64,000 nt of DNA, taken from Mobula hypostoma. Lineage: Eukaryota. This document shows, one piece after another, positions 7,578 to 63,990 of this stretch. The translations under genes were made by a program, and so were the position numbers. Position 1 is the stretch's first letter. Every line of letters begins with the position of its first letter. The stretch is taken from contig NC_086123.1 in assembly GCF_963921235.1 (NCBI RefSeq), positions 31,000,001 through 31,064,000 of the forward strand. The letters run 5' to 3'. Below the pieces are notes generated by a model. It was not told where the DNA came from. It saw only the letters and a program-made list of their open reading frames with translations, and searched no databases.

Positions 7578-8045
7578 TCAGCCTCCACGTAGCCGGAGCA
7601 GCAGAGAGATGGTGGTTAGTGGTCTGATGTTGTAGTAGGAGAGCAATCGCCCATCCTCCAACTGTTTGCCCTCGTAAACCAGGCGCTGCTGGTCGGGTCT
7701 GACTCCCTCCTGCCGATGGACCCGCTCTTTAAACTTCTGCACGGACTCAGAGGGCATCACGTCGTACGTCGTCGTTTTCCCCTTGTCGTTCAGGAGAAAT
7801 ATCTGCATGGATTCCTCTTTCCTGACCAGCAACATGACGGTGGGGCTGGGGTTGAGGTTGTAGTAGCTCAGACTTCTGTCGTCCTGCATCTCCACGCTTT
7901 GGCCATTTTGCATCATCAGACGCTGTTGGGAAATGGGCACGTTGGTCTTTTCCTGGATTTTCATCTTGAGTGTCGACACTTGAATGGAAGGGTCGACATC
8001 AAGGTCGAAACCATCGCCGGTGATGAACCTCACCTGAAGTCTCAT
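7578..8045 (-). CDS. isg15: ISG15-like ubiquitin-like protein, copy 1 (155 aa, two UBLs, exposed LRLRGG)
   Basis: Tandem UBL with C-terminal LRLRGG-stop; acceptor cctttctctacag 12 nt upstream of ATG (exon starts 8057), i.e. a 5'-UTR intron as in fish ISG15; upstream ISRE. Confidence 0.9.
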
Positions 8046-13100: not shown

Positions 13101-13140
13101 CTCGAGTTCAGGTGCAACCCATCCAATCAGTACAGGTTCA
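10102..13140 (-). mobile_element. CR1 LINE (APE + RT, frameshifted, with internal deletions) inserted ~390 bp upstream of the copy 1 ISRE
   Basis: ORFs 12496-12960 (YLNARS, ITETWL), 11343-12392, 11011-11382, 9888-10508; absent at the homologous sites ~385 and ~19655. Confidence 0.9.
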
Positions 13141-14865: not shown

Positions 14866-15264
14866 TAATAAGTTAATATGTAGAATTATCTTCTGGCAGG
14901 TGTTATTGCCTTAATGATTATCTTTGGGACTCAGCACAAAATTGAAAAAATGTTAAACCATCAATTTACACCTAATTCTTAAAATGCACAGACTCATTGA
15001 TAGATTTGTTTCCTTCACCTCTTCTTGATCCTGCAGGAGTCTATTAAAGTTCTTAAAGGAAAAAAATATGGGACAATTTTGAAATCTTTATTTATGGCTA
15101 CAGCAATTGATTATTCAGGTTTTAAATGACGAAAGGATCAATTCCACCTCGCTACATCAGCAAAATTGGAGGTGAGTTTAAATTCAGAACCTTAATACCA
15201 TCCGCCCCAATCAAAGGTGGTTCCATTTCAATTAAGATCAATATCTTAAGACAATAATAAGACA

Positions 15265-17141: not shown

Positions 17142-17609
17142 TCAGCCTCCACGTAGCCGGAGCAGCAGAGAGATGGTGGTTAGTGGTCTGATGTTGTAGT
17201 CGGAGAGCAATCGCCCATCCTCCAACTGTTTGCCCTCGTAAACCAGGCGCTGCTGGTCGGGTCTGACCCCCTCCTGCCGATGGACCCGCTCTTTAAAATT
17301 CTGCACGGACTCAGAGGGCATCACGTCGTACGTCGAGGTTTTCCCTTTGTCATTCAGGAGAAATATCTGCATGGATTCCTCTTTCCTGACCAGCAACATG
17401 ACGGTGGGGCTGGGGTTGAGGTTGTAGTAGCTTAGACTTCTCTGGTCCTGCATCTCCACGCTTTGGCCATTTTGCATCATCAGACGCTGTTGGGAAATGG
17501 GCACGTTGGTCTTTTCCTGGATTTTCATCTTGAGTGTCGACACTTGAATGGAAGGGTCGACATCAAGTTCGAAACCATCGCCGGTGATAAACCTCACCTG
17601 AAGTCTCAT
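17142..17609 (-). CDS. isg15: ISG15-like protein, copy 2 (155 aa)
   Basis: Tandem UBL, LRLRGG-stop; acceptor 12 nt before ATG (exon starts 17621). Confidence 0.9.
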
Positions 17610-22887: not shown

Positions 22888-25089
22888 ATAGAAACATAGA
22901 AACATAGAAAATAGGTGCAGGGGTAGGCTATTCGGCCCTTCGAGCCTGCACCGCCATTTATTATGATCTTGGCTGATCATCCAACTCAGATCCCCGCCCC
23001 AGCCTTCCGTCCATACCCCCTGACCCCCGTAGCCACAAGGGCCATATCTAACTCCCTCTTAAATATAGCCAATGAACTGGCCACAACTGTTTCCTGTGGC
23101 AGAGAATTCCACAGATTCACCACTCTCTGTGTGAAGAAGTTTTTCCTAATCTCGGTCCTAAAAGTCTTCCCCTCTATCCTCAAACCGTGGCCCCTCGTTC
23201 TGGACTTCCCCAACATCGGGAACAATCTTCCTGCATCTAGCCTGTCCAATCCCTTTAGGATCTTATACGTTTCAATCAGATCCCCCCTCAATCTTCTAAA
23301 TTCCAACGAGTAGAAGCCCAGTTCATCCAGTCTTTCTTGATATGAAAGTCCTGCCATCCCAGGAATCAATCTGGTGAACCTTCTTTGTACTCCCTCTATG
23401 GCAAGGATGTCTTTCCTCAGATTAGGGGACCAAAACTGCACACAATACTCCAGGTGTGGTCTCGCCAAGGCCTTGTACAACTGCAGTAGTACCTCCCTGC
23501 TCCTGTACTCGAATCCTCTCGCTATAAATGCCAGCATACCATTCGCCTTTTTCACCGCCTGCTGTACCTGCATGCCCACTTTCAATGACTGGTGTATAAG
23601 GACACCCAGGTCTCGTTGCACCTCCCCTTTTCCTAATCGGCCACCATTCAGATAATAATTTGTTTTCCTATTTTTGCCACCAAAGTGGATAACTTCACAT
23701 TTATCCACATTAAATTGCATCTGCCATGAATTTGCCCACTCACCCAACCTATCCAAGTTACCCTGCATCCTCTTAGCATCCTCCTCACAGCTAACACTGC
23801 CACCCAGCTTCGTGTCATCCGCAAACTTGGAGCTGCTGCATTTAATTCCCTCATCCAAGTCATTAATATATATTGTAAACAACTGGGGTCCCAGCACTGA
23901 GCCTTGCAGTACCCCACTAGTCACCGCCTGCCATTCTGAAAAGGTCCCGTTTATTCCCACTCTTTGCTTCCTGTCTGCCAACCAATTCTCCACCCACACC
24001 AATACCTTACCCCCAATACTGTGTGCTTTAAGTTTGCACACTAACCTCCTGTGTGGGACCTTGTCAAAAGCCTTTTGAAAATCCAAATATACCACATCCA
24101 CTGGTTCTCCCCTATCCACTCTACTAGTTACATCCTCAAAAAATTCTATGAGATTCGTCAGACATGATTTTCCTTTCACAAATCCATGCTGACTTTGTCC
24201 GATGATTTCGCCGCTTTCCAAATGTGCTGTTATCACATCCTTGATAACTGACTCCAGCAGTTTCCCCACCACCGACGTTAGGCTAACCGGTCTATAATTC
24301 CCCGGTTTCTCTCTCCCTCCTTTTTTAAAAAGTGGAGTTACATTAGCCACCCTCCAATCCTCAGGAACTAGTCCAGAATCTAACGACTTTTGAAAAATTA
24401 TCACTAATGCATCGACTATTTCTTGGGCTGCTTCTTTAAGCACTCTAGGATGCAGACCATCTGGCCCTGGGGATTTATCTGCCTTCAATCCCTTCAATTT
24501 ACCTAACACCACTTCCCTACTAACATGTATTTTGCTCAGTTCCTCCATCCCACTGGACCCTCTGTCCCTTACTATTTTTGGAAGATTATTTATGTCCCCC
24601 TTAGTGAAGACAGAACCAAAGTAACTATTCAATTGGTCTGCCATGTCCTTGCTCCCCATAATCAATTCACCTGTTTCTGTCTGCAGGGGACCTACATTTG
24701 TCTTTACCAGTCTTTTCCTTTTTACATATCTATAAAAGCTTTTACAGTCCGTTTTTATGTTCCCTGCCAGTTTTCTCTCATAATCTTTTTTCCCCTTCCT
24801 AATTAAGCCCTTTGTCCTCCTCTGCTGAACTCTGAATTTCTCCCAGTCCTCAGGTGAGCCACTTTTTCTGGCTAATTTGTATGCTTCTTCTTTGGAATTG
24901 ATACTATCCCTAATTTCTCTTGTCAGCCACGGGTGCACTACCTTCCTTGATTTATTCTTTTGCCAAACTGGGATGAACAATTGTTGTAGTTCATCCATGC
25001 AACCTTTAAATGCTTGCCATTGCATATCCACCGTCAATCCTTTAAGTGTCATTTGCCATTCTATCTTAGCTAATTCACGTCTCATACTT
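22888..25089 (-). mobile_element. CR1 LINE, 5'-truncated, open 699-aa RT-containing frame
   Basis: ORF 22986-25085 (NYRPVSL, YLDFQKAFDKV, KFADDTK); same 3' insertion point as 3648-4764. Confidence 0.93.
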
Positions 25090-29667: not shown

Positions 29668-30135
29668 TCAGCCTCCACGTAGCCGGAGCAGCAGAGAGAT
29701 GGTGGTTAGTGGTCTGATGTTGTAGTCGGAGAGCAATCGCCCATCCTCCAACTGTTTGCCCTCGTAAACCAGGCGCTGCTGGTCGGGTCTGACCCCCTCC
29801 TGCCGATGGACCCGCTCTTTAAACTTCTGCACGGACTCAGAGGGCATCACGTCGTACGTCGAGGTTTTCCCCTTGTCATTCAGGAGAAATATCTGCATGG
29901 ATTCCTCTTTCCTGACCAGCAACATGACGGTGGGGCTGGGGTTGAGGTTGTAGTAGCTCAGACTTCTGTCGTCCTGCATCTCCACGCTTTGGCCATTTTG
30001 CACCATCAGACGCTGTTGGGAAATGGGCACGTTGGTCTTTTCCTGGATTTTCATCTTGAGTGTCGACACTCGAATGGAAGCGTCGACATCAAGTTCGAAA
30101 CCATCGCCGGTGATAAACCTCACCTGAAGTCTCAT
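29668..30135 (-). CDS. isg15: ISG15-like protein, copy 3 (155 aa), nearest to OASL
   Basis: Tandem UBL, LRLRGG-stop; acceptor cctttctccacag, exon starts 30147. Confidence 0.9.
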
Positions 30136-30794: not shown

Positions 30795-30967
30795 NNNNNN
30801 NNNNNNNNNNNNNNNNNNNNNNNNNNNNNNNNNNNNNNNNNNNNNNNNNNNNNNNNNNNNNNNNNNNNNNNNNNNNNNNNNNNNNNNNNNNNNNNNNNNN
30901 NNNNNNNNNNNNNNNNNNNNNNNNNNNNNNNNNNNNNNNNNNNNNNNNNNNNNNNNNNNNNNNNNNN
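30795..30967. other. Assembly gap (N run) at the position of the intronic inverted microsatellite
   Basis: Flanks match those of 8729-8800 and 18294-18352. Confidence 0.95.
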
Positions 30968-38019: not shown

Positions 38020-38308
38020 CGCACAGTGAGTCAGCATTGATGGGGCCAGGAAAAGCGATGGAAAGAAAAGGAACCGAACTACGGCGTTATCCACTGAAAT
38101 CGAAATGGGCGCGGTGCTGCCATTAATCAGCTCGAGCGATGACAGCCAACCAGAGCAGTGCCGTGCATAAAATGTAATGTACCGGCAAATTTCACTATAT
38201 TAGAATAATTTGAAGGCGGGGCTGGCGACCGGTTTATAAACAGCTTCTCTGCGGTGGAAGCAAGAAGTTTGGACGCCGCCTGTGAGGAAGAACGTACGCT
38301 CAGTAACG
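38020..38308 (+). promoter_or_regulatory. OASL promoter: AP-1/ARE GTGAGTCAGCA (38026-38036), GAAA-rich tract, ISRE-like GAAATCGAAA (38096-38105), GC box (~38216), TATAAA (38235-38240)
   Basis: Motif matches in a CpG-rich block; TATA ~70 nt upstream of the ATG. Confidence 0.75.
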
Positions 38309-38479
38309 ATGGAGCTACACGAAATAGACCCCGAGAAACTGGACGACTTCATTAAAAAGAACTTGGAGCCAAGCGGATTTAATGTCGAGGTGAGAGAGGC
38401 CATGAACAGGATCTGCGAGTTTTTAAAAAATCAGTGTTTCACCAAACAACCCGACGTTAAAGTGATCAAAGCCGTTAAG
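38309..38479 (+). CDS. oasl: OASL exon 1 ([21 protein letters not shown]...VIKAVK)
   Basis: OAS N-terminal LD.FI...L.P motif; donor AAG|GTGAGT. Confidence 0.88.
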
Positions 38480-41400: not shown

Positions 41401-44400
41401 AATCCTGCACACAAAACATATGCTGGCTATGTTAAACCTGATTTCAATTCTAATTCTGGAAATGTTTGAAAAGAACGATAATTAGATGTGTAACTTTTTT
41501 TGTTGACAGGGTGGATCATCAGGAAAAGGAACAGCTTTAAAAAATAGCTCAGATGCAGATCTCGTCGTCTTTCTCAGTTGCTTCAAAAGTTTCCAGCACC
41601 AGAGAGACACCAGGCATGAAATTCTTGAGGGAATTCGGGCAATGTTGGATAAATATTCTCAAAGCCTTGCATATCAAGTCGATAATATCAATATCAACAT
41701 CATAAAGCAAAGTACCACATCGCCAAAATCTCTGAGTTTTGAGCTGCAATCAAAGAAGAGTTCAGAGACCGTGTCCTTTGATGTTCTGCCAACCTATGAT
41801 GCATTAAGTAAGAATTAATAGCAATGATACGTTGACTATAATTAATAGTAATGTTACATCTCAAATGTAATTTTAATTCTTCTGTCACTGCTTCTGTGGA
41901 TAGGCGGTTTGAAAGGAGCTTGTCTAATTTGCTCTCTTCAGAGTCTTATTCTGAGTCAAGTTGTTGCTGCTGTTGTTAAGGAAGAAAATGCGCTCAGTGA
42001 CCATTTTATTCGGTACTTCCTGTAATCTTGGCCTTCTGCTGCTGTAGCCCATCCACCTCAAGGTTCGAAGTGTTGTACATTCACAAATGCGCTCCTGCAT
42101 GGCTCTGCTGTAACACAAGGCTATTGAATTACTGTCACCTTCCTGTCGGCTTGAACCAGTCTGGCCATTTTCCTCTGACGTCTCACTAACAAGGAGAGTC
42201 TAGCCACTGAACTGCACTCACTGGATGTCTTGTTTTTTATTCGTCTATTCTAAGCCATCTCTAGTGACTGTTGCACATAAGAATCCCAGGAGATCGGCAT
42301 TTTCTGAGATACTCCAACCACCCTGTCTGGCACCAACAATCATGCCACAGTCAGTCACTTAGAATGCATTTCTTCCCTATTCGGATGTTTGATCCAAACA
42401 ACAACTGAACCTGTTGACCAGGACTGCATGCTTTTGTACATTGAATTGCTGCTATGTGATTGGTTGATTAGACATTTGCATTAACGAGCAGGTGTACCTA
42501 ATAAAGTGGCCACTGAATGTAGATTACAGTTCACTTTTTGTCTGTATATGGCACATAAGATTCTTTCATAGGAGAAATAACAAGGAATATTAACCCTAAA
42601 TCTTACTGCTATTGCTTTAACGCTGACATTAAACCAGTTTGATAACAAAATGAATTCCATGGGAAGTCTTGGGTAGCAAGTCTAAAACTTGCTGTTAAAA
42701 GATAATATCTGCCTTTTTCCTTTCCTTTCATAAGAAAGGGATTCATTTTCTTGGCCACTCTTACCAAGATGCAAAAAGCATTAGTCATTATCTTGGGTTA
42801 AATTTACAGGTGATTCTTAGCAGAAATAGAGTTATGGAACACTACAGCATAGAAACAGGCCCTTCAGCCCACCTAGTGCATGCTGAACTATGATTTTGCC
42901 CAGTCCCATCAACTTGTACCTGGACCACAGCCCTCCATACCACACCCATCTATGTATCTATCCGAATTTCTTTTAAATGTTGAAATTGAACCCGCAGCCA
43001 TCACTCTGCTGGCAGCTCATTCCACACACTCACAACCATCTTGTGTGAAGAAGTTCCCCCAAATGTTTTTAAACCAGGGGTTCCCACCCTGGGGTCCACA
43101 GGTTCCTTGGTTAATGGTGCATGGCATAAAAAAGGATGGGGACCCCTGCCTTTAAAATAATCACTTCTCAACCTTAAACCATAACCTCTATTTCTAGTGT
43201 CACCCAACCTCAGTGGGGAAAAAAGCCTGCTTGCTTTTACCCCATCTATAACGGTCATAATTTTGAATACCTCTATCAAATCTCCCCTCATTCTCCTTTG
43301 TTATGCAAACTTCAGCAAACTCTTTCTGGGAACCTTTGGGAAGGTGGAAAATATCCTGAGATTAAATAAACTGGAGTGAATCCAATAGAATGGCCTATTT
43401 GGTCTTGGAGGTGATACTTGACCAGATATTAATCAATAGTCTTTTGACCATGTTCTCATTCATCATTTTATTTCTTGCAGCACCACAGTGTGATAGAAGC
43501 AAAGCACATCTCGAACTAACCCAATTTGCAAACGAGAACGAGATGACAGATGGAGAATTTTCTGCTTGTTTTACGGAACTTCAGAGATCATTTGTGAAGC
43601 GGCAATTTCCAAAGGTTAAAGACTTGATTCGCCTGCTGAAATATTGGTACAAGGAGGTGAGTGACGGAAGAAAGTGATAATTGTTAATCATTGAAAGCCT
43701 ATGGAAGGGTTGTTGTATCAAACCTAAAATGCTATCTTGCTTTGATATCTCAGATTACACCTTCTTCCTCTTTGGCATTTCCTCAGGATCATGGAGTAAG
43801 TGTGTCCCTAGTCCAATGCATCAGGTTCTCAATACAGTCTTGAATATCCCTTCTCCAATTTTGAATGGTTATGGACCGAAGACCCCCAGAATCTTTGGGG
43901 ATGTTGCTATTTGCTTTTGTCTCCCAAGGACCTGCCCAATAGCCAATGCAGGAAACCCATGAGATACCATTGTATGTTTGTGGGCAGAACGCAGCTCTCC
44001 AATGAAATCACTGACTTCCATGGTACAATTTTGGATTGAGTCCCTAGTTTCCAGAGTATACTCCCAGCATGCAACCTGCTTCAGGCTAGAAATGGTCACA
44101 AAGACATTTCTAATTGAATTCAAAATTTATTTTTGATTCAATTTCTCATTCGGTTGAGATTTAACCTAAGGATGTGATGGTCCTCTCTGCTTGACTGATG
44201 GCACCACAGAACTATCAGAGATTGGACAACATGTACTCCCCAACTGACTGACAATATACAGATCATTTCGCCATTTCCATCATTGCCCTGTGTGAGATCT
44301 TGCTTTATACACAAATGGGGTACTTAAATCCAAGTCTTTTCCCTATATATTCTTCTGGTACTCTCAGAACATTCATAAGGCCAAGAAAACAGGAGGAGGA

Positions 44401-47400
44401 GTCATCCCATGGGACTTTGACTTCAGGCTGTGATCATGGCTGACCTGACCTAGATCTCAGTGCAGATTCAGCAATTTGTGTGATGGAGATGTTGAGATAG
44501 GGGCCACTTGGGAATGATCCCATGTAGCCATTGGTCTAGGTGTGGTCTTGGCATGTAACCTCAGGGAGGCTGTTTCATCAGAGAAAATAATGAAGATTCG
44601 AAGTATAGAACCAAAACAGAGGGTAATGAGTGTGCTTAACATCACATTTGCTTATCCGTGATTGTCAATAATTCTCCCTAGTATGTCAAACCACGGAAAT
44701 CAGAGCTGAGAAATGGAGCACGACTGCCTGCAAAGTATGCCTTAGAGTTATTGACCATTTATGCCTGGGAGGAAGGTAATCATCAAGAGAGATTTGACAC
44801 GGCTGAAGGGTTCCGCACAGTCTTGGAACTGATCTGCAGATATCAGGATCTATGTATCTACTGGACTAACTACTATGATGTCAATAATGCAGTTCTTGCA
44901 GAGTTCATAATCAAGAAACTCAGCAACAGAAGGTAAGATTCCCAACCACACTTCAAACTATGCCAAATAATGGGACCCTTTGTTTTTAAATTGGGTTCAC
45001 CTTCTGGATTCTTGTACACACAGGTCCAATAGAAAGTATTACATGGCATCACATTCTTAAAACATAAGACCACAAGGTATAGGAGCAGAATTAGGCCATT
45101 TCGCCCATCAGGTCTGCTGTCATTTCATCATGGCTGTTTCAATTTTCCCCTTAGCCCCAATCTGCTGCCTTCACCTGTATCACTTCATGCACTGATCAGT
45201 CAAGAATCTATCAATCTCTGCCTTAAATATACATAAAGGCTTGGCCTCCACAGTTGGCTGTGGCAAAGAATTCCACAGATTCACCACCCTTTGGCTAAAG
45301 AAATTCCTCCTTATTTCCAATCTAAAAGGACACCCTTCTATTCTGGGGCTGTGTCCTCTGGTGTTAAACTCTCCCACCATACCACTCTATCATGGCCTTT
45401 CACCATTCATTATGTTTCATTGAGGTCACCCTCATCCTTCTGAATTCTAGTGAGTGCAGGCACAGAGCCATCAAATGCTCTTCATATGACAAACCATTCA
45501 ATCCTGGAATCATTTTCGTGAACCTCCTTTGAACCCTCTACAGTTCCGAAGGTAACATCTGAAAGTATCTCTTAATGTTCCTCATTTCCTAACTAACCAC
45601 TGTTGCCTACCTTACTCAGATGATTGACTTCAGAGTCCTCAGCCTTATTTACAATTCTCTACCTCACCACAGTCTACCCTCTGTCACCTCACCATTTTTT
45701 GCCTCCTCAAGCTCTTTTAGCCAGTGTTTCTATTTCACTTTTTGGCCATTTTCCATCAGTAGTAGTATTTTCTGTCAGCTTTCTCTCATCTTATGGAGTT
45801 TTCCGTAGAGTACTTCCTCATTTCAAAGTTTGACTCAAAATCTCAGAATACATTCCTCACATTTTGTGGATGTCCATTTCTGTTTCTGTTGTGATGGCAG
45901 ATGGGGAATGTGTAGATCTGTACGCATTGTGACATGTATTCAGTGATACATCTGTTTGAATTATTGTTACCATGTTTGGGAATACTGTGATGATCAATGA
46001 CAAATTCTGAGGCTGCGGAGGAATGGAGAGTTGAGGCCACAGACACTACCATTGTAGCCGACTAGAGCTGGGCAGGAAAGTTGATTCCTTTTTCTGCTCA
46101 TTGTGCTGCCTGTGTATGGGATGGGGAATGGGTGGCTTTGATGTTCTGATGTTCCTGTCATTCATTCATTTGTTTTTTTTAATTTTGTGGATGTCTGTGA
46201 AGAGTAAGAATTTCGGGTTGTATACTGTATACTTTCTCTGATAATAAATTGAACACTTTTGTCATAAACTGATGGAGGATTAATGCAAATTGATCACAAA
46301 GATGGCCATTATACGCAGTGCGTGTACTGTCAGCAAATAGCTCAAAGTTCAATCTTGTCATTGGAATGCTTTTATTTTTCAGACCGATCATTCTTGATCC
46401 AGCTGATCCAACTGGAAACGTGGCTTCATCAGATGGTTGGAATGTGATGAAAGATGAGGCCAGGAAATGGCTAAGCATGCCTTGTGTCTCTAATGTTGAG
46501 GCATGGGATGTCCAGGTAAGAGTTTGAATAATTGATTTTCAGATATAAGGGAGTGGAGATACATTATTCCCCATTTTCTTTCACCCTGCCAGTGTCTGGC
46601 TACTGATAAACATCCCAGACTGCCTCTGCCCAGGGGATATGCTACAGTCTGTCGCAGGCCTTCTGATTTTGCACTGCTTGAATTGTCCTCTATGGTAATT
46701 TGCAGTCTCTGGTGCTGAAAACCAGCCACCTTACCTCACCTTGTTGCTCATTATTGGGTGGAGTTTCGAGCTAAGCAAGGTCCTGGTGAACATGGCACAT
46801 GTATTACGTGCAGATTTGAATGCCTTGTGACATGGTTCTATTTCATTATCTAGGTTAATCATCCTAAATGTTTAAAGCCTAACCATTTTAAAATACAGTT
46901 GATTACTAGGTAATACACAACCGAAGCAGGGGGTGACCCAGCTTTTGGGGTCTTGAACTGTGGATTTATACAACATGTTTAATATTGGAAAAAACTTATT
47001 GAGGTGGCAATCTTATTGAAACCCATCAAATATTGAAAGGGCTAGACCGTGGACGTGGAGTGGATGCTTCCTACAGTGGGGACTCTAGGACTAGAGGCCA
47101 AGCCTCAGAATAGAGGGACATCCATTCAGAATGGCGATGAGAAGGAACTTCTGTAACCAGAGGCTGGTGAATGTGTGGAATTCATTGTCACAGACGGATG
47201 TGGAGGCCAAATCACTTAGTGTATTAAAAGAGGAGGTTGATTGGTTCTTGATTAGTCAGGGCATCAAAAGTTAAGAGGAGAAAGCAGAAGAATGGGGTTG
47301 AGAGGGAAAATATATCAGCCATGATAGAATGGTGAAGCAAACTCAATGGGCTGAATGGCCTAATTCTGTTGCTATGTCTTATGGATTTAAGTTTTCAGTG

Positions 47401-48984
47401 ATGTGTTTGGGAAAACTGATCGGTGGTAGTATCTGTGGCTGTGGAGGAATGGGCAGTTGAGGTTATAGACATAACTATTTTACCCAGATCAAGCCAAAAA
47501 AGTTCAGTTCTGGTTGATTTCTTTTTCTCCTACTCCTTGTGTTCGATTCACTAAGTTGCTTGACGACAACTGGTAGAAATGATTATAGAATTCAACAGAA
47601 AAACTGAGTTACAACAAGTGAAATGAACAAGTGTCTGACCTGTAACTTGACACTCATCACACCAAAGTGGGTTCCTTTTTTGATTGTATCTTCAGCTGTG
47701 TAACATTAATAAGATGAGGTTTAATATCACAGGCACATGTCATGAAATTTATTATCTTTGCAGCAATGCAGTACATAATAGAGGAAAAAATGACCTACAT
47801 TATGTGTGTGTGTATACTATATCTTAAATAGTTGAATTAAATAAAGTAGTGCAAAAAAGAAAGTTGTGGTGTAGTGTTTGTGGCTTCAATGTCCATTCAG
47901 ACAGGAAGAAGTTGTTGGGTGTGACCTTCAGGCTTCTGTACCTCCACCCTGATGGTAGCAATGACACGAGGGCATGTCCTGGGGAGGGGGGTCTTTAATG
48001 AAGGACACCACCCTTCTGAGGCATCGTTCCTTGAAGATGTCCTGGATACTACGAAGGCTAGTGCCCATGATGGAGCGGACTAATTTTACAACTCTGTGCT
48101 GGTTACCTAATCCTGTGCAGTAGCTCCACTCCCCCACACCACCCATACCAGATGGTGATGCAGTCAGTTAGAAAGCTCTGTCGAAATTTGCAGGAGTTTT
48201 TGGTGACAGACCGAATAGTGGAGAATGGAGCTCCAAATGAACAGCAAATCAGAGTTGTCTGCTGATTGAGACCATGACAGCCTACGCCACACTGTTGGAG
48301 CTCGCAATCCCATGGCACGCATCCACCCTCACTTCAGCCCTTGCAATTTATTCCACAGAGTGCTCTTGGTGCAAGTGTAGTTTTGCACACTAACGACACC
48401 CATAACTACCCTTCAAGTTGTCGTTTCCCATCTCCCTCTTTTGTTTTCTGTCGCCTCTGAAGTATAAAAGGAACATATTTTACTTCTGCCCATTTTTGTT
48501 TTGTTTACCTCAGTCAGTGAAGACATTCCGAGTCACGGTGACGGCCCTGAATGGTAATTCGTTACAGCAAAATGCCAGCATTTACAACAAGGTCTCTGAG
48601 ATCAAACGTGGCATCCAGGAAGAGTGGAACATCCCAGCTCTTCAGCAATGCCTGCAATTCAAAGACACCATTCTGGATGATAGGATCACCTTGCTGGTTG
48701 CCAAGATCTTCTTTGATGCAGAAATCCAGCTGCTCACCCTGAGTGTAATGGAGATATTTGTCGGGATAGACGGGCGTAACCGGACGATCCAGGTTTTGCC
48801 AAGTGACAAGGTTTCAAGTTTAAAAGCTAAAATTGAATCCCTGGAGCGAATCCGGCGAAGCCAGTACTACTTAACCTTTCAATCAACGCCGCTTGAAGAT
48901 GAACGTACACTGCAATCTTACGGCATTACGCAATATTCTACCATCCTTGTCAACCTGAGAGTGCGTGGTGGCAGCGAGATTTAA
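38309..48984 (+). CDS. oasl: 2'-5'-oligoadenylate synthetase-like protein with two C-terminal UBLs; join(38309..38479,41510..41807,43481..43656,44682..44932,46383..46515,48514..48984) = 1500 nt, 499 aa
   Basis: All five introns GT-AG with matching phases (0,1,0,2,0); OAS motifs [63 protein letters not shown]; last exon is a tandem UBL. Confidence 0.92.
38690..38935 (-). mobile_element. L2-type LINE 3' fragment in OASL intron 1
   Basis: [22 protein letters not shown]....LLKVPRV. Confidence 0.6.
38935..39770 (+). mobile_element. L1/Tx1-type LINE 3' fragment (Cys-rich ORF2 C-terminus)
   Basis: [14 protein letters not shown]......CDRC......L.Y.VWSCP.L. Confidence 0.7.
41510..41807 (+). CDS. oasl: OASL exon 2: NTase core ([16 protein letters not shown]); missed by the ORF track
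   Basis: Hand translation; acceptor ttgacag, donor A|GTAAGA. Confidence 0.92.
41991..42519. mobile_element. Tc1/mariner-type MITE with TIRs in OASL intron 2
   Basis: CGCTCAGTGACCATTTTATTCGGTAC ... GTACCTAATAAAGTGGCCACTGAATG, followed by TA. Confidence 0.75.
42830..43280 (-). mobile_element. CR1 3' fragment
   Basis: [12 protein letters not shown]...WNELP. Confidence 0.75.
43481..43656 (+). CDS. oasl: OASL exon 3 ([12 protein letters not shown]...[15 protein letters not shown])
   Basis: Acceptor ttgcag, donor GAG|GTGAGT. Confidence 0.92.
44682..44932 (+). CDS. oasl: OASL exon 4 ([16 protein letters not shown]...[11 protein letters not shown]...LCIYWTNYY)
   Basis: Acceptor ccctag, donor AG|GTAAGA. 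Confidence 0.92.
45060..45545 (-). mobile_element. CR1 3' fragment
   Basis: [31 protein letters not shown]. Confidence 0.75.
46383..46515 (+). CDS. oasl: OASL exon 5 ([14 protein letters not shown]...WDVQ)
   Basis: Acceptor tttcag, donor CAG|GTAAGA. Confidence 0.92.
48514..48984 (+). CDS. oasl: OASL exon 6: tandem UBL ending LRVRGG-SEI
   Basis: Polypyrimidine tract + cctcag acceptor, phase 0; aligns to ISG15 and ubiquitin. Confidence 0.9.
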   Translation, partial: SVKTFRVTVTALNGNSLQQNASIYNKVSEIKRGIQEEWNIPALQQCLQFKDTILDDRITLLVAKIFFDAEIQLLTLSVMEIFVGIDGRNRTIQVLPSDKVSSLKAKIESLERIRRSQYYLTFQSTPLEDERTLQSYGITQYSTILVNLRVRGGSEI

Positions 48985-49644
48985 CTTTCTAATGCAGAGG
49001 ATCCTAACTAAACAGTTTGAAAATCAATGGCAGTGATAAAGACCTGAATTAGTTTTTACATTTAAAGTACCTTTGGTTAATTACCTTGGTCGAATCAGCA
49101 CTAACTGTAACTGATGTGAGGTAGGAACTCTTGAAACACATATTCCATATTGTGTTCTTTCTGAGGGAACATAGCCCAGGTTAGCTAATGTGACCAATAT
49201 CTGCTGATGGAACTGGGGTGATTTGGAAGCTTGGATGATTTATGCATCTTGGGTACCTTGTAAGTGCACAATCCAACCCCCCTTGGACCTCATCAAACCC
49301 ATGTGGACACTTCTCCCATGGTGGACTTTAAACTCTGGCAAGCCTTAAACTTGTCCACAACTCTCATCTCTTACACCACACACGTACAAAGTGGATAGCC
49401 GTGCCTATTGATTTTTGAATCTATTCAATTATTATGCTTTTTTTTCCCTCAAGGCACTTCTCTTAAGTATCATAAATATAATGACTTGAACCGAGTAAAT
49501 GATTTTTCTGCGACTCCACATCGATACAACGTGAAAAATAGCCATTGGCTGAATGGCAGGGAAGAAGCTTTGCTCAAATTATCTGAATAATATTAATTTA
49601 ATATAATGTAAATTCTGTTTTGTACTGTGTGAAATTCGGCTGTC

Positions 49645-49654
49645 AATAAATAAA
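49645..49654 (+). terminator. OASL polyadenylation signal (overlapping AATAAA x2)
   Basis: AATAAATAAA ~660 nt after the stop, followed by T/GT-rich sequence. Confidence 0.65.
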
Positions 49655-50955
49655 GCTGTTTTAATGTTTGAAGGATTATCGGGCTGGTTTTGCTTAATCA
49701 AGGATCTTATATTCATTTGCTCAAATTATCTATTGTGGGCTATTTAAACTGATTGACTATAAAAGGTAGAACAGAATTTGGCCATTTGCACTATTGGGCC
49801 TGGTCCACCATTCCATCATGGCCAATTTATTTGCCCTCTCAACTCCATTCTGTTGCCTTCTCCCTGTAACCTTTGATGTTTTTACCAACTGAGAACCTAT
49901 CAAACTCTGCATTAAATAAACCCAATGACCTAGCCTCCACAGCCATCCGTAGCAATGAAATATGCAGATTTACCACCATCTGGCTGAAGAAGTACCGAAG
50001 TACTCCCCATCTTTGTTCTGAAGGTTGTGTGCCCTGGTCTCCGAATGCTCCATTATAGGAGACATCCTCTCCACATCCAGTCTATTGAGACCTTTCAATT
50101 TTCAATAAGTTTCAATGAGATTTCCCCCCTCATTCTTCTAAACTCCAGTGAGTACAGGCCCAGAGCCATCATACACTCCGCATATGTTAATCCTTTCATT
50201 CCCAGACCATTCTTGTGATCCTCCTCTGGATCCTCTCAAGTACCAGCACATCCTTTTCACCGATAATGGGCACAAAACTGTTCACAGAATTCCAAGTGTA
50301 GTCTGATCGATCACCACTGAATTATTTTCCCATTGTGTTCTAAGTGTCCATTTTGTAAGGATCAGTGTGCTTGGTTTTTTTTATTCACATGATGTGTGTA
50401 TCTCCAACAAGATCGGTATTCAATGACTATCCATCACTACTCCTGAGTGGCTTACTGGCCAGTTCAGTGAACAGTTAAAAGTCAACACATTGCTGTGAAT
50501 CTGGTGAGGCAGAATGGGTTAGAAAGTCACTGAACTGGTTGGGGGCTTAAACAAGCTTAAACTTTCCTGGCAACCACCTGCAGCACCAGAGTTTACAGAG
50601 GGATATTGACTGCCCAGCCTTTTCAGTGACAATAGGTCTTATACATTTGGATCAATGTGCAGATCTATGCAATGTCAATTAACTCCTGTGATCATAATCA
50701 GCATATTTACAAATGATTCAGATGATGAGAAAGAAAGCAAAGTTTATTCATGATTGACAGATTGACACAAGGGTTTTTTTTTATTAATATGGGTGGTGTT
50801 AAGGCAATTTTGGAGTTAGCACATATATCAAATAACTTCAGCCACCAATCTTCAGATCTGAATATGGACTGTAGATTACGTGTAAAATGCTCTGGAGCAT
50901 GGGATCGTAGAGGTGTGAAAACAACAATTGATTGAAGGACCAGAAAATACCAAAA

Positions 50956-53470
50956 TGAACCACGTCACACTTATCTGGGTTGAACTCCATCTGCCACTTC
51001 TCAGCCCAGTTTTGCAACCTATCAATGTCCCGCTGCACCCTCTGACAGCCCTCTACACTATCCACAACACCCCCAACCTTTGTGTCATCAGCAAACTTAC
51101 TAACCCATCCGTCCACTTCCTCTTCCCGGTTATTTATAAAAATCACGAAGAGCAAGGGTCCCAGAACAGATCTCTGAGGGACACCACAAGTCACCGACTT
51201 CCATGCAGAATATGACCTGTCTACAACCACTCTTTGCCTTCTGTAGGAAAGCCAGTTCTGGATCCACAAAGCAATGTCCCCTTGGATCCCATGCCTCCTT
51301 AGTCAAGTCAAGTCACTTTTTATTGTCATTTTGACCATAAACTGCTGGTACAGTACACAGTAAAAATGAAACAACGTTCCTCCAGGAACATGGTGCCACA
51401 TAATGCTTAATTTCTCAATAAGCCTTGCATGGCCTACCTTATCAAATGCCTTGCTGAAATCTATATACACTACATCTACTGCTCTACCTTCATCAATGTG
51501 TTTAGTCACATCCTCAAATAATTCAATCAGGCTCGTAAGGCACGACCTGCCCTTGACAAAGCCATGCTGACTATTCCTAACAATATTATACCTCTCCAAA
51601 TATTCATAAATCCTGCCTCTCAGGATCTTCTCCATCAACTTACCAACCACTGAAGTAAGACTCACTGGTCCATAATTTCCTGGGCTATCTCAACTCCCTT
51701 TCTTGAATAAGGGAACAACATCCGTAACCTCCGGAACCTCTCCCGTCCCCATTGATGATGCAAAAATCATTGCCAGAGGCTCAACAATCTCCTCCCTCGC
51801 CTCCCACAGTAGCCTGGGGTACATCTCATCGTCCCTGTGACTTATCCAACTTGATGCTTTCCAAAAACTCCAGCACATCCTCTTTCTTAATATCGATATG
51901 CTCAAACCTTTCAGTCTGCTGCAAGTCATCCCTACAATCGCCAAGCTCCTTTTCCATAGTGAATACTGAAGCAAAATATTAATTAAGAACTTCTGGTATT
52001 TTCTCCGGTTCTATACACACTTTCCCACTGTCATTCTTGATAGGTCCTATCCTTTCTTGTCTTATCCTCTTGCTCTTCACATACTTGTAGAATGCCTTGG
52101 GGTTTTCCTTAATCCTACCCACCAAGGTCTTCTCATGGCCCCTTCTGGCTCTCCTAATTTCCTTCTTAAGCTCTTTCCTGTTAGCCTTATAATCTTCTGG
52201 ATCTCTAACATTACCTAGCTCTCTGTACCTTTTATAAGCTTTTCTTCTCGACTAGATTTACTCCAGCCTTTGTACACCACGGTTCCTGTACCCTACCATA
52301 ACTTCCCTCTCTCATTGGAATGTACCTATGCGGAACTCCACACAAATATCCCCTGAACATTTGCCACATTTCTTCTGTACCTTTCCCTGAGAACATCTGT
52401 TCCCAATTTAAGCTTCCAAGTTCCTGCCTGATAGCCTCATAATTCCCCTTACTCCAATTAAACACTTTTCTAACTTGTCTGAACCTATCTTTCTCCAAGG
52501 CTATTGTAAAGGAGATAGAATTATGATCACTATCTCCAAAATGCTCTCCTACTGAGAGATCTGACACCTGACCAGGTTCATTTCCCAATAACAAATGAAG
52601 TACAGACTCTCCTCTTGTAGGCTTATCTACATATTGTGTCAAGAAACCTTCCTGAACACACCTATCAAACTCCACCCCATCTAAACCCCTTGCTCTAGGA
52701 AGATGCCAATCAACATTTGGGAAATTAAAATCTCCCACCATGACAACTCTGTTATTATTACACATTTCCAGGGTCTGTTACCTTATCTGCTCCTTGATAT
52801 CCCTGTTACTATTGGGCGGCCTATAAAAAACACACACTAGAGTTATTGACCCCTTCCTGTTCCTAACCTCCACCCACAGAGACTCCGTAGACAATCTCTC
52901 CATGTTGTCCACCTTTTCTGCTGCCTTGACGCTATCTCTGATCAACAGTGCCATGCCCCCACCTCTTTTACCTCCCTCCCTGTCCTTTCTGAAACATCTA
53001 AAACCTGGCACTTGAAGTAACCATTCCTGTCCCTGAGCCATCCAAGTCTCGGCAATGGCTACCACATCATAGCTCCAAGTACTGATCCATGCTCTAAGCT
53101 CATCCGCTTTGTTCACAATACTCCTTGCATTAAAATAGACACCATCGGTCTGAATGCTTCCCTTCTTTATCACCTGCCTATCCTCCCTCACACACTGTCT
53201 CCAAGCTTTCTCTATTTGTGAGCCAACCACCTCTTCCCCAGTCTCTTCAGTTCAGTTCCCTGACCAGACGAAGGTCATCGAGCTACACCTCCAGTTCCCT
53301 AACGCGGTCCCATAGGAGCTGCAGCTCGACACACCGGCAGCAGATATGGATGTCTGGGAGGCTGGGAGACTCCAGGGCTTCCCACATCTGACACCGAGCG
53401 CAGAAAATCGGCCGCACACACATTCTTCCTTTCCACAATTAACACGGGTAAACCTGCCTCGCCTCATCCC
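50956..53470 (-). mobile_element. Degenerate CR1 (5' region, APE and part of RT), lacking its 3' end, with a ~100-bp nested LINE tail at ~51301-51400
   Basis: ORFs 52778-53230, 52232-52765, 51303-51665, 50838-51269 with CR1 motifs. Confidence 0.88.
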
Positions 53471-58366: not shown

Positions 58367-60370
58367 GATATTTTTTCCTACAGTTTCCTGCTTCTGACTT
58401 TGAACGTTTCCTCTGTTAACAGCAACGTCAGATCTCGAAATCGAAACTTAGCCTGAGAACGGGGAAATGAAAACTTGTGCAAAACAATGTTTGAACTTCA
58501 GCCTGTGAATCGACACAAAGATTGTTTACTTGTGTTGAAACAACACCTCTCATCTCCACTCGTTCGATTAACCCTGGGCTGTACTCTTCGCAGTGAAATT
58601 TAACATGATTGCTTCCATTTACTGTATTGCTGAGGTCAGAATTTACACAGAGGGGCCACTGCACTCCTGTAGTAATTGTGGCGCAGAACGCGTCATGGTT
58701 ATGTGCTGGGCTTTCTGAGCTTTGCAATAAGTGACTTTAATTCTTTTTTTCACAGTTGGTATCAAACATCCTACCGAGTGTTTAGTTTCACGGCACATCG
58801 AGTATCATTCACTCGGACAAGCCGATCTGTTCCCTTTCTGATTGGATGAGCTGTGAAGATAGGCATGCAAGTTGTCCAATAGAAGAGAGAGTGGGCTGGA
58901 TGTTTGGGACAACATAACACATGAGGAATGAGCCAAAGAGCAGTTTGATAATAGGTTTGTTTTATTCCACTCCATTTTGACACCTGCTGCCCTTTCCAGC
59001 TCAATTCCACAGAACATTTAATTTCAAATTCAAAGAAAATGTTATTATCAAAGTAGATATATGTCATTATATACAATCCTGAGATTCATTTTCTTGTCTC
59101 TATAATAGTAACTATAAAAGGATTAATGAAAGAATAAATGGTAATAAATAACAAGAACATGAGATAATGAGATAAAGAGTCCCTAAAAGTGAGATCATTG
59201 GTTGTGGGAAGGTTTCAATGATGGGGCAAGCACGAGGCCCTTCATTTTATTCATGAGACTAATGGTTAAGGGGTAGTAACTGTTCCTGAACCTGGTGGTG
59301 GGAGTCCTGAGGCTCTTGTGCCTTCTACCTGATGGCAGAAGCAAAAAGAATGCATGTCCTGGGAGATGGGGATCTCTGATGATGGATGCTGCTTTCCTAT
59401 GACAGCATTTCATGTAGATATTTTTTTCTAGAGTTTCCTGCTTCTGACTTTAAACATTTCCTCTGTTATTTGCAACGTCAGATCTTGAAATCGAAACTTA
59501 GCCCGAGAACGGGGTAATGGAAACTTGTGCAAAAAAAATGTTTGCTGAACGCCAGCCTGTGAATTGACATAAAGATTGTTCACTTGTGTTGAAACAACAC
59601 CGTTCATCTCCACTCCTTTGATTAACCCTGGGCTGTACTCTTCGCAGTGAAACTTAATATGATTGCTTCCATTTATTGCTGAGGTCCGAATTTACACATA
59701 GGGCCACTGCACTCCTGAAGCAATTGTGGTGCAGAACGCATCGCGGCTGTGTCCTGGGCTTTCGGAGCTTTGCAATAAGTGACTTTCATTCTCTTTTCAC
59801 ATGCCTGATATATAAAAAAAGGGATGTAAACAGGATTTGTTTTATTCCAGTCCATTTTGACATCTGCAGCCCTTTCCAGCCTAATTCCACAGAACACTTA
59901 ACATCAAATTCAAAGTAAATTTTATTATCAAAGTACATATATGCCATCATTTTCATCGTTTTCCCTAAGATTCATTTTCTTGTGGGCATACTCAGCAAAT
60001 CTATATAGTAGTAACTATAACAGGATCAATGAAAGATCAACCAGAGTGCAGAAGACAACAAACTGCGCAAATGCAAATACAGTATAAATAAATGGTAATA
60101 AGTAACAAGAACATGAGATAATGAGATAAAGATTCCCTAAAAGTGAGATCATTGGTTGTGGGAAGGTTTCAATGATGAGGCAAGCACGAGGCCCTTCATT
60201 TTATTCACGAGACTAATGGTTAAGGGGTAGTAATTGTTCCTGAACCTGGTGGTGGGAGTCCTGAGGCTCTTGTGCCTTCTACCTGATGGCAGAAGCGAAA
60301 AGAATGCATGTCCTGGGAGATGGGGATCTCTGATGAGGGATGCTGCTTCCCTATGACAACATTTCATGTA
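58367..60370. repeat. Tandem duplication (~1050-bp period), each unit with a perfect ISRE and a Rex-type LINE 3' fragment
   Basis: 58367 and 59417 both start GATATTTTTT; GAAATCGAAACT at 58437 and 59487; near-identical ORFs 59195-59413 and 60149-60418. Confidence 0.85.
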
Positions 60371-61199: not shown

Positions 61200-63990
61200 T
61201 AGCACTGTCCAGACTCCACCTGTGGAGAGTTTGAACAATGGTTGCAAGAGGTTGACAGCACTGGCTTTCCAGGGCGGTTTAAGGCATGGATTTACCAGCA
61301 CGGTGTGCTACCAAGAATCCTCTGGCCACTGCTTCTCTAGGATTTTCCAGTTTCCACTGCTGCTGAATTAGAGAGGGTAGTCAGCCAGTTGCTGTGAAGA
61401 TGGCTGGGTTTACCGAGGAACATCAGCAGCATCGCTCTGTACAGGAATAACTGCAAACCGAGGCTCCCCCTGAAGTCCATCGAGGAGGAGTTCAAGGTTT
61501 GGTGAGCAAGAGAGGTGCTGCAGTTCCGGGAGTCTTCAGATCCAAAAAGGTTGCCGGAGCAGGAGTGGAAGTGAGAACTGGAAGAGAGCGGAGAGCAGAG
61601 GCTGCAGTGAGAGAAGCTGAGACGCGACTGAGCCACAAAGTGCCTGTGGGGGCAGTCGCCAAGGGAAGAGTTGGACTTGGAAGCCTTGAAGTCCCCCATT
61701 TTGACAAAGTACAAGGGCAGGAGTGACAAGAACTGGTCCGGAATGAAATAAGGGCAGCTGTCGAGGAGGAGAGGACCAGCAGAGCAGTGGCAATGAAACA
61801 GCAAAGAGCCTGGACCAAATGGGAGCAGGTGATCGAGCGAAAGATCACGTGGAACCATCTCTGGAAGGTGGATCCACACCACATCAAGTTCCTTATCCAG
61901 GCTGTTTATAGAGAACAAGGTGGATGATCTTAAAGGGAGACTCACCTAATGCAGAGAGATGCAGAACTGCTGTGTATTCTGTTTCACCAAGACCTGGCTC
62001 TCCCCGCCACTCCAGACTGTGCCATCCGACCGGAGGGATTTTCGATCCATCGGATGGACTGCACGGCGTCTTCAGGCAAGACGAAAGGAGGTGGTGTCTG
62101 CTTACTGATCAACACTGGGTGGTGCTCGGACACAGTGGCACGGACAAGCTCCTGCAGCCCAGACCTGGAACACCTGTCAGTGAAGTGTCGTCTCTACTAT
62201 CTGCCACGGGAATTCACCTCGGTCATACTGACAGCGGTCTACATTCCCCCCCCAGGCGGACGTGGAGTGTGCTCTGAACATACTGTATGCCAACATCAGT
62301 GAACTTGAGACCAGGTATCCGGAGGCTTTGCTCATTACAGCCGGGGACTTTAACCAGGGCAACCTCAGAAAGGCACTGCCAAAGTTATACCAACATGTCT
62401 GCTGCCCCACTAGAGGCCCCAATATACTTGACCACTGCTACACAGCAGTCAAGGATGCCTACCATTCCGTCCCACGACCTCACTTCGGAAAATCGGACCA
62501 TCAGGCCGTACTCCTCCTCCCAGCTTACAAACAGAAACTGAAGCGGGAGGTCACGGTGTCAAAAGTAGTGTCGCATTGGACGGAGGAAATGGATGAGGTC
62601 CTCCGTGACTGCTTTGAATCGGTGGACTGGTTAGTATTCAAGGATTCGTCAGCTAACCTCGATGAGTATGCCTCAGCTGTCACGGACTTTATTTGGAAAT
62701 GCACGGACACTGTGTGCCTCGCAAGACGATCCGGGTATTCCCCAACCGGAAACCTTGGATGAATTATGAGGTCAAGTCCCTTTTAAAGGCTAGAGCTGCG
62801 GCTTTTAGGTCCAGGGATACGAGTCGCTACACGGAATCCAGGCGTGAACTCTGGAAAGCCATTAAGGGTGCCAAGAGGCAATATCGAGCCTAGTTGGAAG
62901 CCCAGGCTTGCATTTGGGTCCATTCCCAACGTCCCCATTGTGAAACTTGAAGTCCCCCATTTTGACAAAGTGCAAGGGAAAGAGCGACGAGAACTGGTCC
63001 AGAATGAAGTAAGGGCAGCTGTGGAGGAGGAGAGGACCAGCAGAGCAGTGGCAATGAAACAGCAAGGAGCCTGGACCAAATAGGAGCAGGTGATCGAGCG
63101 AAAGATCACGTGGAACCATCTCTGGAAGGTGGATCCACACCACATCAAGTTCCTTATCCAGGCTGTTTATGACATCCATCCTAGCCCATCCAACCTGCAC
63201 TGCTGGGGCCTTGCAGAACCACCAGCTTGCCCCCTTTGTGAGAAGACCAGTACACTAGAGCACATTCTGAGCTGCTGCCCCAGAGCTCTTGCTGATGGCC
63301 GGTATCAGTGGCAGCATGACCAGGTCCTCCGGACAATTGCTAAAACATCTGCAGCACCCCTAACATCTGCCGGAAAAGAATACCACCTGCTTTGTCAAAG
63401 AGGGGGAAAATCGAACAGAACACCGGAAAGCAACCGGCTTGCTCTTCACTTCACAGTATTGGAAGCTAAAACCAGACCTGGGAAAACAGCTGCAGTTTCC
63501 ACCCCACGTCACAGAGACTACATTGCAGCCCGACATTGTGTCTGTGGTCCGACTCATTGAAGCATGTTTTTGCTTGAGCTTACTGTGCCATGGGAAGAAC
63601 GCATGGAGGAGGCCTACGAGCGGAAAAGAGCCAAGTATGAGGATCTGAAGAACAGCTGCCAAAGAAGAGGCTGGAGAGCAAAGTGCTGGCCCGCGGAGGT
63701 CGGGGGTCGTGGCTTTGCCGGCCAGTCACGCTCAAAGTGTACACTGCACTTGGAATCACGGGAGAGAGAAGGAGGAGAGCCACTTCTACCACCACAGATG
63801 CAGCAGAGGAAGCGTCAAGGTGGCTCTGGATAAAGAGGGCAGATCTGTGGGTTGCCGCTAGGGCACAGGCCGGGGTCTGATCAACCCCGGTTGGGTCACC
63901 TGGGCGAGGGTGTACGATGTTGAAAGACCCAAAACACCCGACGACCCCAGGTAACATCACCGATGATGTGCCCTAGCTTAGCATCATGCA
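61200..63990 (+). mobile_element. HERO-type (R2-like, restriction-like endonuclease) non-LTR retrotransposon 3' portion, degenerate and interrupted
   Basis: GRFKAWIYQHGVLPRILWPLL; CPLC...LEHILSCC; RY.W.HDQVL; PDIV; LLELTVPWEE; EVG.RGF. Confidence 0.8.
61910..62906 (+). mobile_element. Internal APE-endonuclease fragment of a Rex1/Babar-type LINE embedded in the HERO element
   Basis: GGGVCLLIN..WC, YLPREFTSVILTAVYIPP, AGDFN, LDHCY, FGKSDH. Confidence 0.8.

Follow-up and report, generated by a model that had tools for sequence, protein, structure and literature searches.

Can an OASL protein be clipped behind a terminal diglycine and attached to other proteins in a vertebrate that also has ISG15? 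The question is raised by an OASL gene in a 64,000-nt stretch of Mobula hypostoma DNA (contig NC_086123.1, positions 31,000,001 to 31,064,000; this whole stretch is called the window, and coordinates count from its first letter), whose predicted product carries two C-terminal ubiquitin-like (UBL) domains and ends in LRVRGG followed by SEI. Chicken OASL is made as a pro-form and conjugated through LRLRGG, with GG-remnant sites mainly on OASL itself, and this pro-form is cleaved by some nairovirus OTU proteases (PMC8764230). OASL conjugation was framed as a peculiarity of birds, which are without ISG15 (PMC8764230), and in our literature search the LRxRGG end of OASL was discussed for birds only. 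The sequence comparisons presented here support another history, in which the LRxRGG end is an old, conserved feature of OASL that was lost once in mammals and is not a novelty of birds. As for its use, we lean, with somewhat more belief than doubt, toward an intact OASL with a conserved LRVRGG and a dispensable cap that is clipped, activated by an E1 enzyme, and conjugated as a whole enzyme.

An OASL gene with a capped LRVRGG end

The OASL gene lies on the + strand and has six exons, with a 1500-nt coding sequence of 499 codons, GT/AG at all introns, and matching phases. Its end, at 48940-48984 (+), reads ACC ATC CTT GTC AAC CTG AGA GTG CGT GGT GGC AGC GAG ATT TAA. The first-pass annotation had given this C terminus as LRVRGG plus SEI and a stop, a transcription that is exact on re-reading of the DNA. 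It had also labeled the gene OASL, correctly, as Pfam NTP_transf_2, OAS1_C, and two ubiquitin-family domains are found across the spliced exons. These exons were searched against the databases one by one. Among full-length proteins, the OASL of Hemitrygon akajei matches best, at 84% identity. The 3' part of the gene contains the following features.

48514..48984 (+): OASL exon 6, 471 nt, with the entire tandem UBL region and the stop (PF00240, two stretches)
~48523-48738 (+): UBL1, within exon 6
~48748-48972 (+): UBL2, within exon 6
48955..48972 (+): LRVRGG, the ubiquitin/ISG15-type C-terminal motif
48973-48981 (+): three-residue tail SEI
48982-48984 (+): TAA stop
48985..49011 (+): relic tail LSNAEDPN-stop, in frame past the OASL stop

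Conservation of the motif in cartilaginous fishes

A phmmer search with exon 4 against 1.84 billion representatives returned 182 OAS-family clusters, and a follow-up search with the Heptranchias OASL, whose hits were for the most part OAS2/OAS3 and polyubiquitin, gave the chondrichthyan OASLs. UBL1 of the coelacanth OASL, used alone in a word-indexed search, matched only itself, being too divergent to share words with other sequences. The resulting alignment holds 15 sequences, the window plus 14 OASLs from 13 species. All chondrichthyan OASLs recovered (the window, the 14 aligned sequences, and two partial models) carry the GG, so that a GG missing from relatives, which the first-pass annotation had named as fatal to its proposal, was not encountered. 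The motif takes the form LRLRGG in 13 of the 14 relatives, LQLRGG in one skate paralogue, and LRVRGG in the window.

Across the 15 chondrichthyan sequences, the column entropies of the motif are 0 bit for the first Leu, 0.35 bit each for the next Arg and for Leu/Val, and 0 bit for the second Arg and for both Gly residues. Conservation drops right past the GG, with entropies of 2.37, 1.37, and 2.28 bit at positions +1, +2, and +3. The hexamer is the lowest-entropy run of six residues in the 156-aa di-UBL (0.12 bit, against a mean of 1.01 bit). Its entropy is 0.19 bit, against a mean of 1.46 bit, in 20 non-mammalian OASL rows, 2 of which (coelacanth and snake) are ISG15-derived. The three residues that come next score 2.0-2.4 bit. 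The hexamer is by these values no chance match. This pattern, together with GG in 15 of 15 chondrichthyans, indicates that the LRxRGG end has been kept under strong purifying selection beside free ISG15. The free ISG15 which the first-pass annotation ascribed to this organism is present as three 155-aa open reading frames (ORFs) inside the same window. More generally, all cartilaginous fishes examined keep ISG15, and it lies right beside OASL in the four genomes with readable context.

The cap behind the GG

Tails of chondrichthyan OASLs range from 3 residues (in the window, Cetorhinus, Chiloscyllium, Stegostoma, and S. canicula) to 21 residues (in Callorhinchus). The Hemitrygon akajei OASL (P0158) ends GGSEIQLPNAVDPN, and the stop of the window OASL stands where Hemitrygon has a Gln codon. 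When the relic LSNAEDPN-stop is compared with the Hemitrygon QLPNAVDPN-stop, 6 of 8 residues match and the second stop is at the same position. Because this relic can still be read past the stop, it appears that a premature stop lately cut a 12-residue tail to 3 residues and left the gene unharmed. The cap appears dispensable in evolution: it varies both in length and in sequence, and it was lately shortened in this genome. A processed precursor of the ubiquitin family would be expected to look like this, with an invariant GG and then a tail that is free and dispensable.

The tails of chondrichthyan OASLs mostly start x-E-[I/L/V/T], and the longer ones go on with Q. This start resembles the M-E-I or M-Q-I with which a UBL or a ubiquitin repeat begins, and in a HMMER alignment GG-SEI of the window falls on GG-MQI of polyubiquitin. 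The likeness could be left over from an ancestor built of head-to-tail repeats, or it could be chance.

Ancestral or avian

The C termini of OASLs from other vertebrates are as follows.

Lungfish: LRLRGG
Caecilian: SLRLRGG
Axolotl: LRLKGG and MRLRGG, with MRLREG in one copy
Zebra finch: LRLRGG + VGPQLP
Coelacanth: LRLRGG + SIPY
Snake (Candoia): PRLRGG
Marsupial OASL1 and OASL2, and bat OASL: no GG (P0057, P0085, P0095)

We built a maximum likelihood tree from 33 rows of tandem-UBL regions and rooted it on di-ubiquitin. Chondrichthyan OASLs (100/99), lungfish, axolotl, finch, and mammals form an OASL clade (89/89), apart from the ISG15 clade (95/88). GG is found in 13 of the 16 rows of this OASL clade, and as the three rows without it make up one mammalian subclade (99/96), a single loss in mammals is the most parsimonious explanation. 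The first-pass annotation had contrasted a human OASL without the motif with an avian OASL carrying an LRLRGG type. This agrees with our rows, GG-less in mammals and LRLRGG + VGPQLP in the finch. Its further claim, that the tail is ancestral and not an avian compensation for the loss of ISG15, also gains from these data, since retention beside ISG15 is the parsimonious reading of both the GG distribution and the UBL tree. NTase-OAS1_C-UBL has been described as the ancestral architecture in jawed vertebrates (PMC10400998).

The LRLRGG-type ends of the coelacanth and the snake were considered as cases of retention as well and rejected, because their UBLs are ISG15-derived according to the UBL tree and the approximately unbiased (AU) test. 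The UBLs of the coelacanth OASL (P0019/P0322) pair with coelacanth ISG15 (100/98, 77.6% identity), and those of the snake (P0045) fall among the ISG15s. Grouping all OASL UBLs into one clade is rejected by the AU test with p = 0.0003, for a group that was named once the tree had been seen. These cases represent either secondary capture of ISG15 by OAS genes or chimeric models of adjacent genes. An independent gain of UBLs has been reported in squamates (PMC10400998).

We also observed a second old paralogue class, in which an OAS unit is followed by only one UBL and by a prenylation-type CaaX box at the C terminus (CILM, CSIL, CTLL, CVCL, or CCII). Members were seen in sharks, coelacanth, caecilians, and an amphisbaenian (P0065, P0274, P0017, P0105, P0039), and its shark and ray members have an OAS-domain clade of their own. 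CaaX boxes are additionally found in the tails of models P0001, P0003, P0004, and P0006. Neither a second OAS gene nor an OAS-UBL-CaaX paralogue was found in the 64-kb window.

Fold of the UBL domains

AlphaFold2 modeling of the 156-aa exon-6 product, with an alignment of 23 relatives, gave two beta-grasp domains with a mean predicted local distance difference test (pLDDT) score of 90.4. Scores below 50 occur only at residues 153-156 (G-S-E-I). The Hemitrygon orthologue (84% identical), modeled at full length with a pLDDT of 83.9, again has a post-GG tail of low confidence. The protein is therefore modeled with the parts of a conjugatable precursor, namely a beta-grasp fold, a flexible tail bearing GG, and then a short extension. 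Foldseek searches of the PDB with the exon-6 model returned linear di-ubiquitin, the chicken OASL di-UBL (7SBI), and ISG15, all with E ~1e-15, and phmmer aligned the entire di-UBL end to end with the PDB sequences of ISG15 (E ~1e-16) and 7SBI. Aligned to ubiquitin, UBL2 retains R72, R74, G75, and G76, with V in place of L73.

The enzyme part

Upstream of the UBL exon, the gene encodes an OAS unit with the following features.

38309..38479 (+): OASL exon 1, 57 codons, ATG at 38309, GT donor at 38480; tblastn matches ray and shark OASL N termini
41510..41807 (+): OASL exon 2, nucleotidyltransferase core, Pfam NTP_transf_2 (PF01909)
41510-41533 (+): P-loop GGSSGKGT in exon 2
41552-41554, 41558-41560, and 41780-41782 (+): catalytic Asp codons D72, D74, and D148 (model numbering)
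43481..43656 (+): OASL exon 3, start of OAS1_C (PF10421, E = 8e-15)
44682..44932 (+): OASL exon 4, core of OAS1_C (PF10421, E = 3.4e-30)
46383..46515 (+): OASL exon 5, end of OAS1_C (PF10421, E = 1.3e-11)

When exon 2 was aligned to the OAS1 structure 4ig8, the P-loop GGSSGKGT, SDADL, and FDVLP were all kept and the three catalytic Asp residues were intact. The gene thus carries the GSxGKGT P-loop and Asp triad of an active OAS, and it is predicted to encode an active-type synthetase, like avian OASL. Structure matches of exon 2 reach 87.3 bits for OAS2 and 63.7 bits for OAS1, but only 35.8 bits for human OASL (4xq7).

Several lines of evidence bear on whether this gene belongs with OASL or with OAS1-3. 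The order of a nucleotidyltransferase (PF01909, exon 2) followed by OAS1_C (PF10421, exons 3-5) is that of OASL, with structure matches to OAS1/2/3. Two C-terminal UBLs appear to follow in frame, on the evidence of two PF00240 stretches, two beta-grasp folds, and a phase-matched junction. The nearest full-length proteins are chondrichthyan OAS-UBL-UBL proteins, with the Hemitrygon sequence at 84%, and the UBL tree groups the gene with finch and mammalian OASL at 89/89; in the OAS-domain tree, the deep nodes are unresolved. Architecture and phylogeny probably place the window gene under OASL ('OASa.U' of PMC10400998).

How the motif may be used

The expectation that the cap comes off draws on the general biology of ubiquitin, ISG15, NEDD8, and SUMO precursors. 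By analogy with these and with chicken OASL, a deubiquitinase or deISGylase would remove the SEI cap, and an ISG15- or ubiquitin-type E1-E2-E3 cascade would then activate the bared Gly. The whole 56-kDa enzyme would become isopeptide-linked to lysines, either its own (possibly mainly) or those of other proteins, and an active sensor of double-stranded RNA and synthetase would in this way be tethered or oligomerized.

A number of observations weigh against such conjugation or against the history that goes with it. For non-avian OASL, it matters that conjugation and protease cleavage have been shown for the chicken protein only. Among the 15 chondrichthyans, only the window has Val four residues ahead of the cleavage point, where all relatives have Leu, and LXGG-specific proteases read this position. 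UBL2 lacks a ubiquitin-like Leu8-Ile44-Val70 hydrophobic patch: it departs from the Ile44 patch of ubiquitin by L8 to I, I44 to T, H68 to L, and V70 to N, with the T and N substitutions nearly fixed among chondrichthyan OASLs. Given this altered patch, compatibility with UBA1 or UBA7 and an E2 cannot be assumed. However, ISG15 likewise deviates from the Leu8-Ile44-Val70 patch, which indicates that the patch defines ubiquitin proper and not all modifiers. On the side of history, the support for the OASL-UBL clade is only moderate (89/89). The OAS-domain tree separates the chondrichthyan OAS-UBL-UBL (100) and OAS-UBL-CaaX (99) groups, with its deep nodes unresolved, and sauropsids are sampled by one finch sequence plus the six bird species of PMC8764230.

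Alternative explanations

It is possible that the LRxRGG end is conserved for a noncovalent role and that OASL is never conjugated, for instance because the end docks to USP18/ISG15 machinery, acts as a pseudo-substrate and decoy for viral deubiquitinating or deISGylating proteases, or contacts partners that bind ubiquitin, RIG-I-like receptors for example. We consider this unlikely but give it real weight, as the proteases and binding domains that read ubiquitin or ISG15 also need RLRGG, such that conservation cannot separate binding from conjugation, and as UBL2 has not retained the Ile44 patch that serves much of the ubiquitin machinery. Mammalian OASL does bind RIG-I noncovalently via its UBL (summarized in PMC8764230), but it performs this role without the motif, which is thus unneeded for it. 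The chicken protein, whose layout is the same, does undergo conjugation (PMC8764230). The invariant GG with a tail free in length and sequence, as described above, bears the signature of a processed precursor. Moreover, UBL domains used for binding only generally lose the GG. Alternatively, clipping past the GG may be the end point, tuning the stability, localization, or oligomerization of OASL (e.g., through an exposed C-terminal degron or a surface for interaction) with no E1 step. The tail is modeled as disordered and accessible, viral OTU proteases are able to cut the chicken pro-form (PMC8764230), and evolution tolerates tail loss, as the 3-aa tails of several sharks and of the window attest. 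A regulatory tail should nevertheless be conserved, whereas this one is among the most variable positions and was shortened without loss of the gene. Clipping alone also gives no account of why Arg-Leu-Arg before the GG is fixed as in conjugated modifiers, and we find it improbable.

The remaining two explanations concern whether the motif belongs to OASL in any functional sense. The motif might be a functionless relic that has been kept ISG15-like by gene conversion or by repeated capture of an ISG15 exon. Opportunity exists, since ISG15 adjoins OASL in the window, Hemitrygon, Cetorhinus, and Callorhinchus, and there is precedent in the ISG15-derived UBLs on OAS genes or models of the coelacanth (77.6% identical to its own ISG15) and a snake, as well as in the independent squamate gain (PMC10400998). 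However, the window OASL di-UBL is only 33% identical to ISG15, and the motif codons differ (CTG AGA GTG CGT GGT GGC in OASL, CTC CGG CTA CGT GGA GGC in ISG15). On these two grounds, gene conversion from the adjoining ISG15 was ruled out for the window and does not explain retention of the motif. Chondrichthyan OASL UBLs form their own clade, far from chondrichthyan ISG15, and the hexamer stayed fixed across the chimaera-elasmobranch split while the rest of the domain diverged freely. A relic is accordingly quite improbable. We give still less credence, indeed hardly any, to an annotation artifact in which the UBL exon is a separate ISG15-like gene that is not spliced to the OAS exons. It is true that automated models elsewhere are often chimeric, such as the multi-unit models of 1,657 aa (P0003) and 2,277 aa (P0001). 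Exon 6, though, lies on the same strand 2 kb past exon 5, with a polypyrimidine tract and an AG acceptor whose phase matches exon 5, and its open frame has no in-frame ATG before UBL2, which argues that it is not a separate ISG15-like gene. Single-unit models of ~500 aa with the same junction are found in about 10 other chondrichthyan species.

Comparison with known systems

The window OASL appears to resemble avian and not mammalian OASL in its sequence features. Avian OASL (7SBI; Shepard et al. 2022, PMC8764230) has the same layout of one OAS unit and two UBLs, an Asp triad, and an LRLRGG-type motif with a few extra residues, and it shares the fold (Foldseek E = 1.1e-15, phmmer E = 4.3e-15) and the OASL-UBL clade. 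The two differ in that the di-UBLs are only ~33-35% identical, that the window has Val for Leu in the motif, and that the ray keeps three free ISG15 genes beside OASL whereas birds are without ISG15. Mammalian OASLs (human OASL, mouse OASL1 and OASL2) have an orthologous architecture with UBLs in the same clade. Unlike the window OASL, they are without the GG motif (PMC8764230), and human OASL is catalytically inactive (PMC8764230, PMC10400998) while the window gene keeps the triad.

ISG15 shares with the window OASL two beta-grasp domains, an LRLRGG-type end, end-to-end alignment, an interferon context, and physical linkage in chondrichthyans. It differs in being a stand-alone protein of 155 aa that, in the window and in most cartilaginous-fish ISG15s examined, is encoded mature at the GG, whereas in OASL the di-UBL is preceded by an enzyme of 340 aa and followed by a cap. 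It also differs in belonging to a separate clade at 33% identity. The OASL di-UBL, encoded by an internal exon without a start codon and placed outside the ISG15 clade, does not have the form of a free modifier, which for ISG15 is a stand-alone protein of ~155-165 aa that clusters with other ISG15s. The OAS-UBL-CaaX paralogues (Scyliorhinus P0065 and P0274, caecilian P0105) are similar in having an OAS unit and then a UBL, and they occur in the same chondrichthyan genomes. In contrast to the window OASL, they have one UBL, a CaaX box (CILM, CTLL) instead of LRLRGG, and a separate OAS-domain clade (99).

In bacterial type II CBASS (cyclic oligonucleotide-based antiphage signaling system), the cGAS/CD-NTase, an antiviral nucleotidyltransferase from the same broad superfamily, is attached to targets via its own C-terminal glycine by an E1/E2-like enzyme and can be released by a protease (Jenson et al. 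2023, PMC10097602). The likeness to the window OASL is a functional analogy only, as the bacterial enzyme is without a UBL, the Cap2/Cap3 machinery is unrelated in detail, and there is no sign that the conjugation feature descends from a common ancestor.

Neighboring genes and locus context

The features outside the OASL coding sequence are as follows.

7578..8045 (-): ISG15 copy 1, 155-aa ORF, LRLRGG-stop
17142..17609 (-): ISG15 copy 2, 155-aa ORF, LRLRGG-stop
29668..30135 (-): ISG15 copy nearest OASL, 155 aa, LRLRGG-stop; head-to-head with OASL and ~8 kb from its start
38096..38107 (+): ISRE-like GAAATCGAAATG, 213 nt upstream of the OASL ATG
38233-38240 (+): TATA-like TTTATAAA, ~70 nt upstream of the OASL ATG
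49645..49650 (+): candidate poly(A) signal, the first AATAAA past the OASL stop, ~660 nt downstream

The three ISG15 genes are located 8-30 kb upstream of OASL on the opposite strand, with a spacing of ~10-12 kb. They show 95-96% nucleotide identity over at least 2 kb, and by this measure the copies are recent duplicates. Each differs at 3-4 residues from a Mobula hypostoma protein (for the copy nearest OASL, 3 of 155 residues versus P0277, 98% identity), and around the Mobula hypostoma gene, ISG15 copies stand in a similar array about 10 kb apart. The window ISG15s are encoded mature, with no propeptide, and most cartilaginous-fish ISG15s examined likewise end at the GG, unlike mammalian ISG15.

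Hemitrygon and Cetorhinus, too, have a gene of the ubiquitin family or of ISG15 type beside OASL. In Callorhinchus, a 155-aa ISG15 that ends at the GG lies 5.4 kb upstream of OASL in head-to-head orientation (in locus L001, ISG15 at 4146-4613 on the - strand and OASL at 10001-15070 on the + strand). The ISG15-OASL linkage therefore appears as old as the cartilaginous fishes, and it may bear on the origin of the OASL UBL exon. In the same chimaera locus, the first OAS-UBL gene has a UBL exon (14795-15225) that matches the window UBL in two pieces in different frames, which suggests a frameshift, by mutation or assembly error, that may explain the truncated isoform P0216. The next OAS-UBL gene downstream has an intact UBL exon.

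The window contains 8 copies of the core pattern of the interferon-stimulated response element (ISRE) where 4.7 are expected, which is no significant enrichment, so only the position of the -213 element is suggestive. From this position, the OASL of the window may be interferon inducible. Elsewhere, two identical perfect ISRE 12-mers, GAAATCGAAACT, lie 1,050 nt apart at 58437-58448 and 59487-59498 (+). They have no recognizable gene adjoining and no OAS exons downstream, and they may belong to a repeat element or to a gene beyond the window.

Long interspersed nuclear element (LINE)-type ORFs with endonuclease and reverse-transcriptase motifs are located at 22986-25085 (-), 25824-28652 (+), 9888-12960 (-), 50838-53230 (-), and 61900-63600. 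They take up a large share of the sequence that separates the ISG15 copies and of that downstream of OASL, and one is an uninterrupted ORF of 942 aa. A run of 173 N at 30795-30967 is situated just upstream of the ISG15 copy nearest OASL.

Implications

OASL conjugation itself is not new, having been published for chicken (PMC8764230), and the advance made here is one of evolutionary scope, not of kind. Rays, sharks, and chimaeras have the capped LRxRGG end as a fixed feature, and lungfish and amphibians carry it as well, which does not fit the framing as a bird peculiarity. More tentatively, the OAS-UBL fusion may have arisen at the base of the jawed vertebrates for the sake of covalent attachment of OASL, with cartilaginous fishes running two interferon-induced modifiers in parallel, a ready-made ISG15 and a capped OASL pro-form whose clipping would allow an active 2-5A synthetase to be tethered on demand to itself or to targets, mammals having lost the latter arrangement, and the whole forming a eukaryotic counterpart of bacterial CBASS; we regard this as possible but doubtful. 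The window OASL also offers two practical handles. Its tail is naturally pre-shortened, and its Val for Leu would set OASL remnants apart in mass from those of ubiquitin and ISG15 in nontryptic digests. If the motif is used, "OASLylation" would be an old vertebrate antiviral arm that mammals have lost, and the fusion of an enzyme with a modifier merits testing outside birds.

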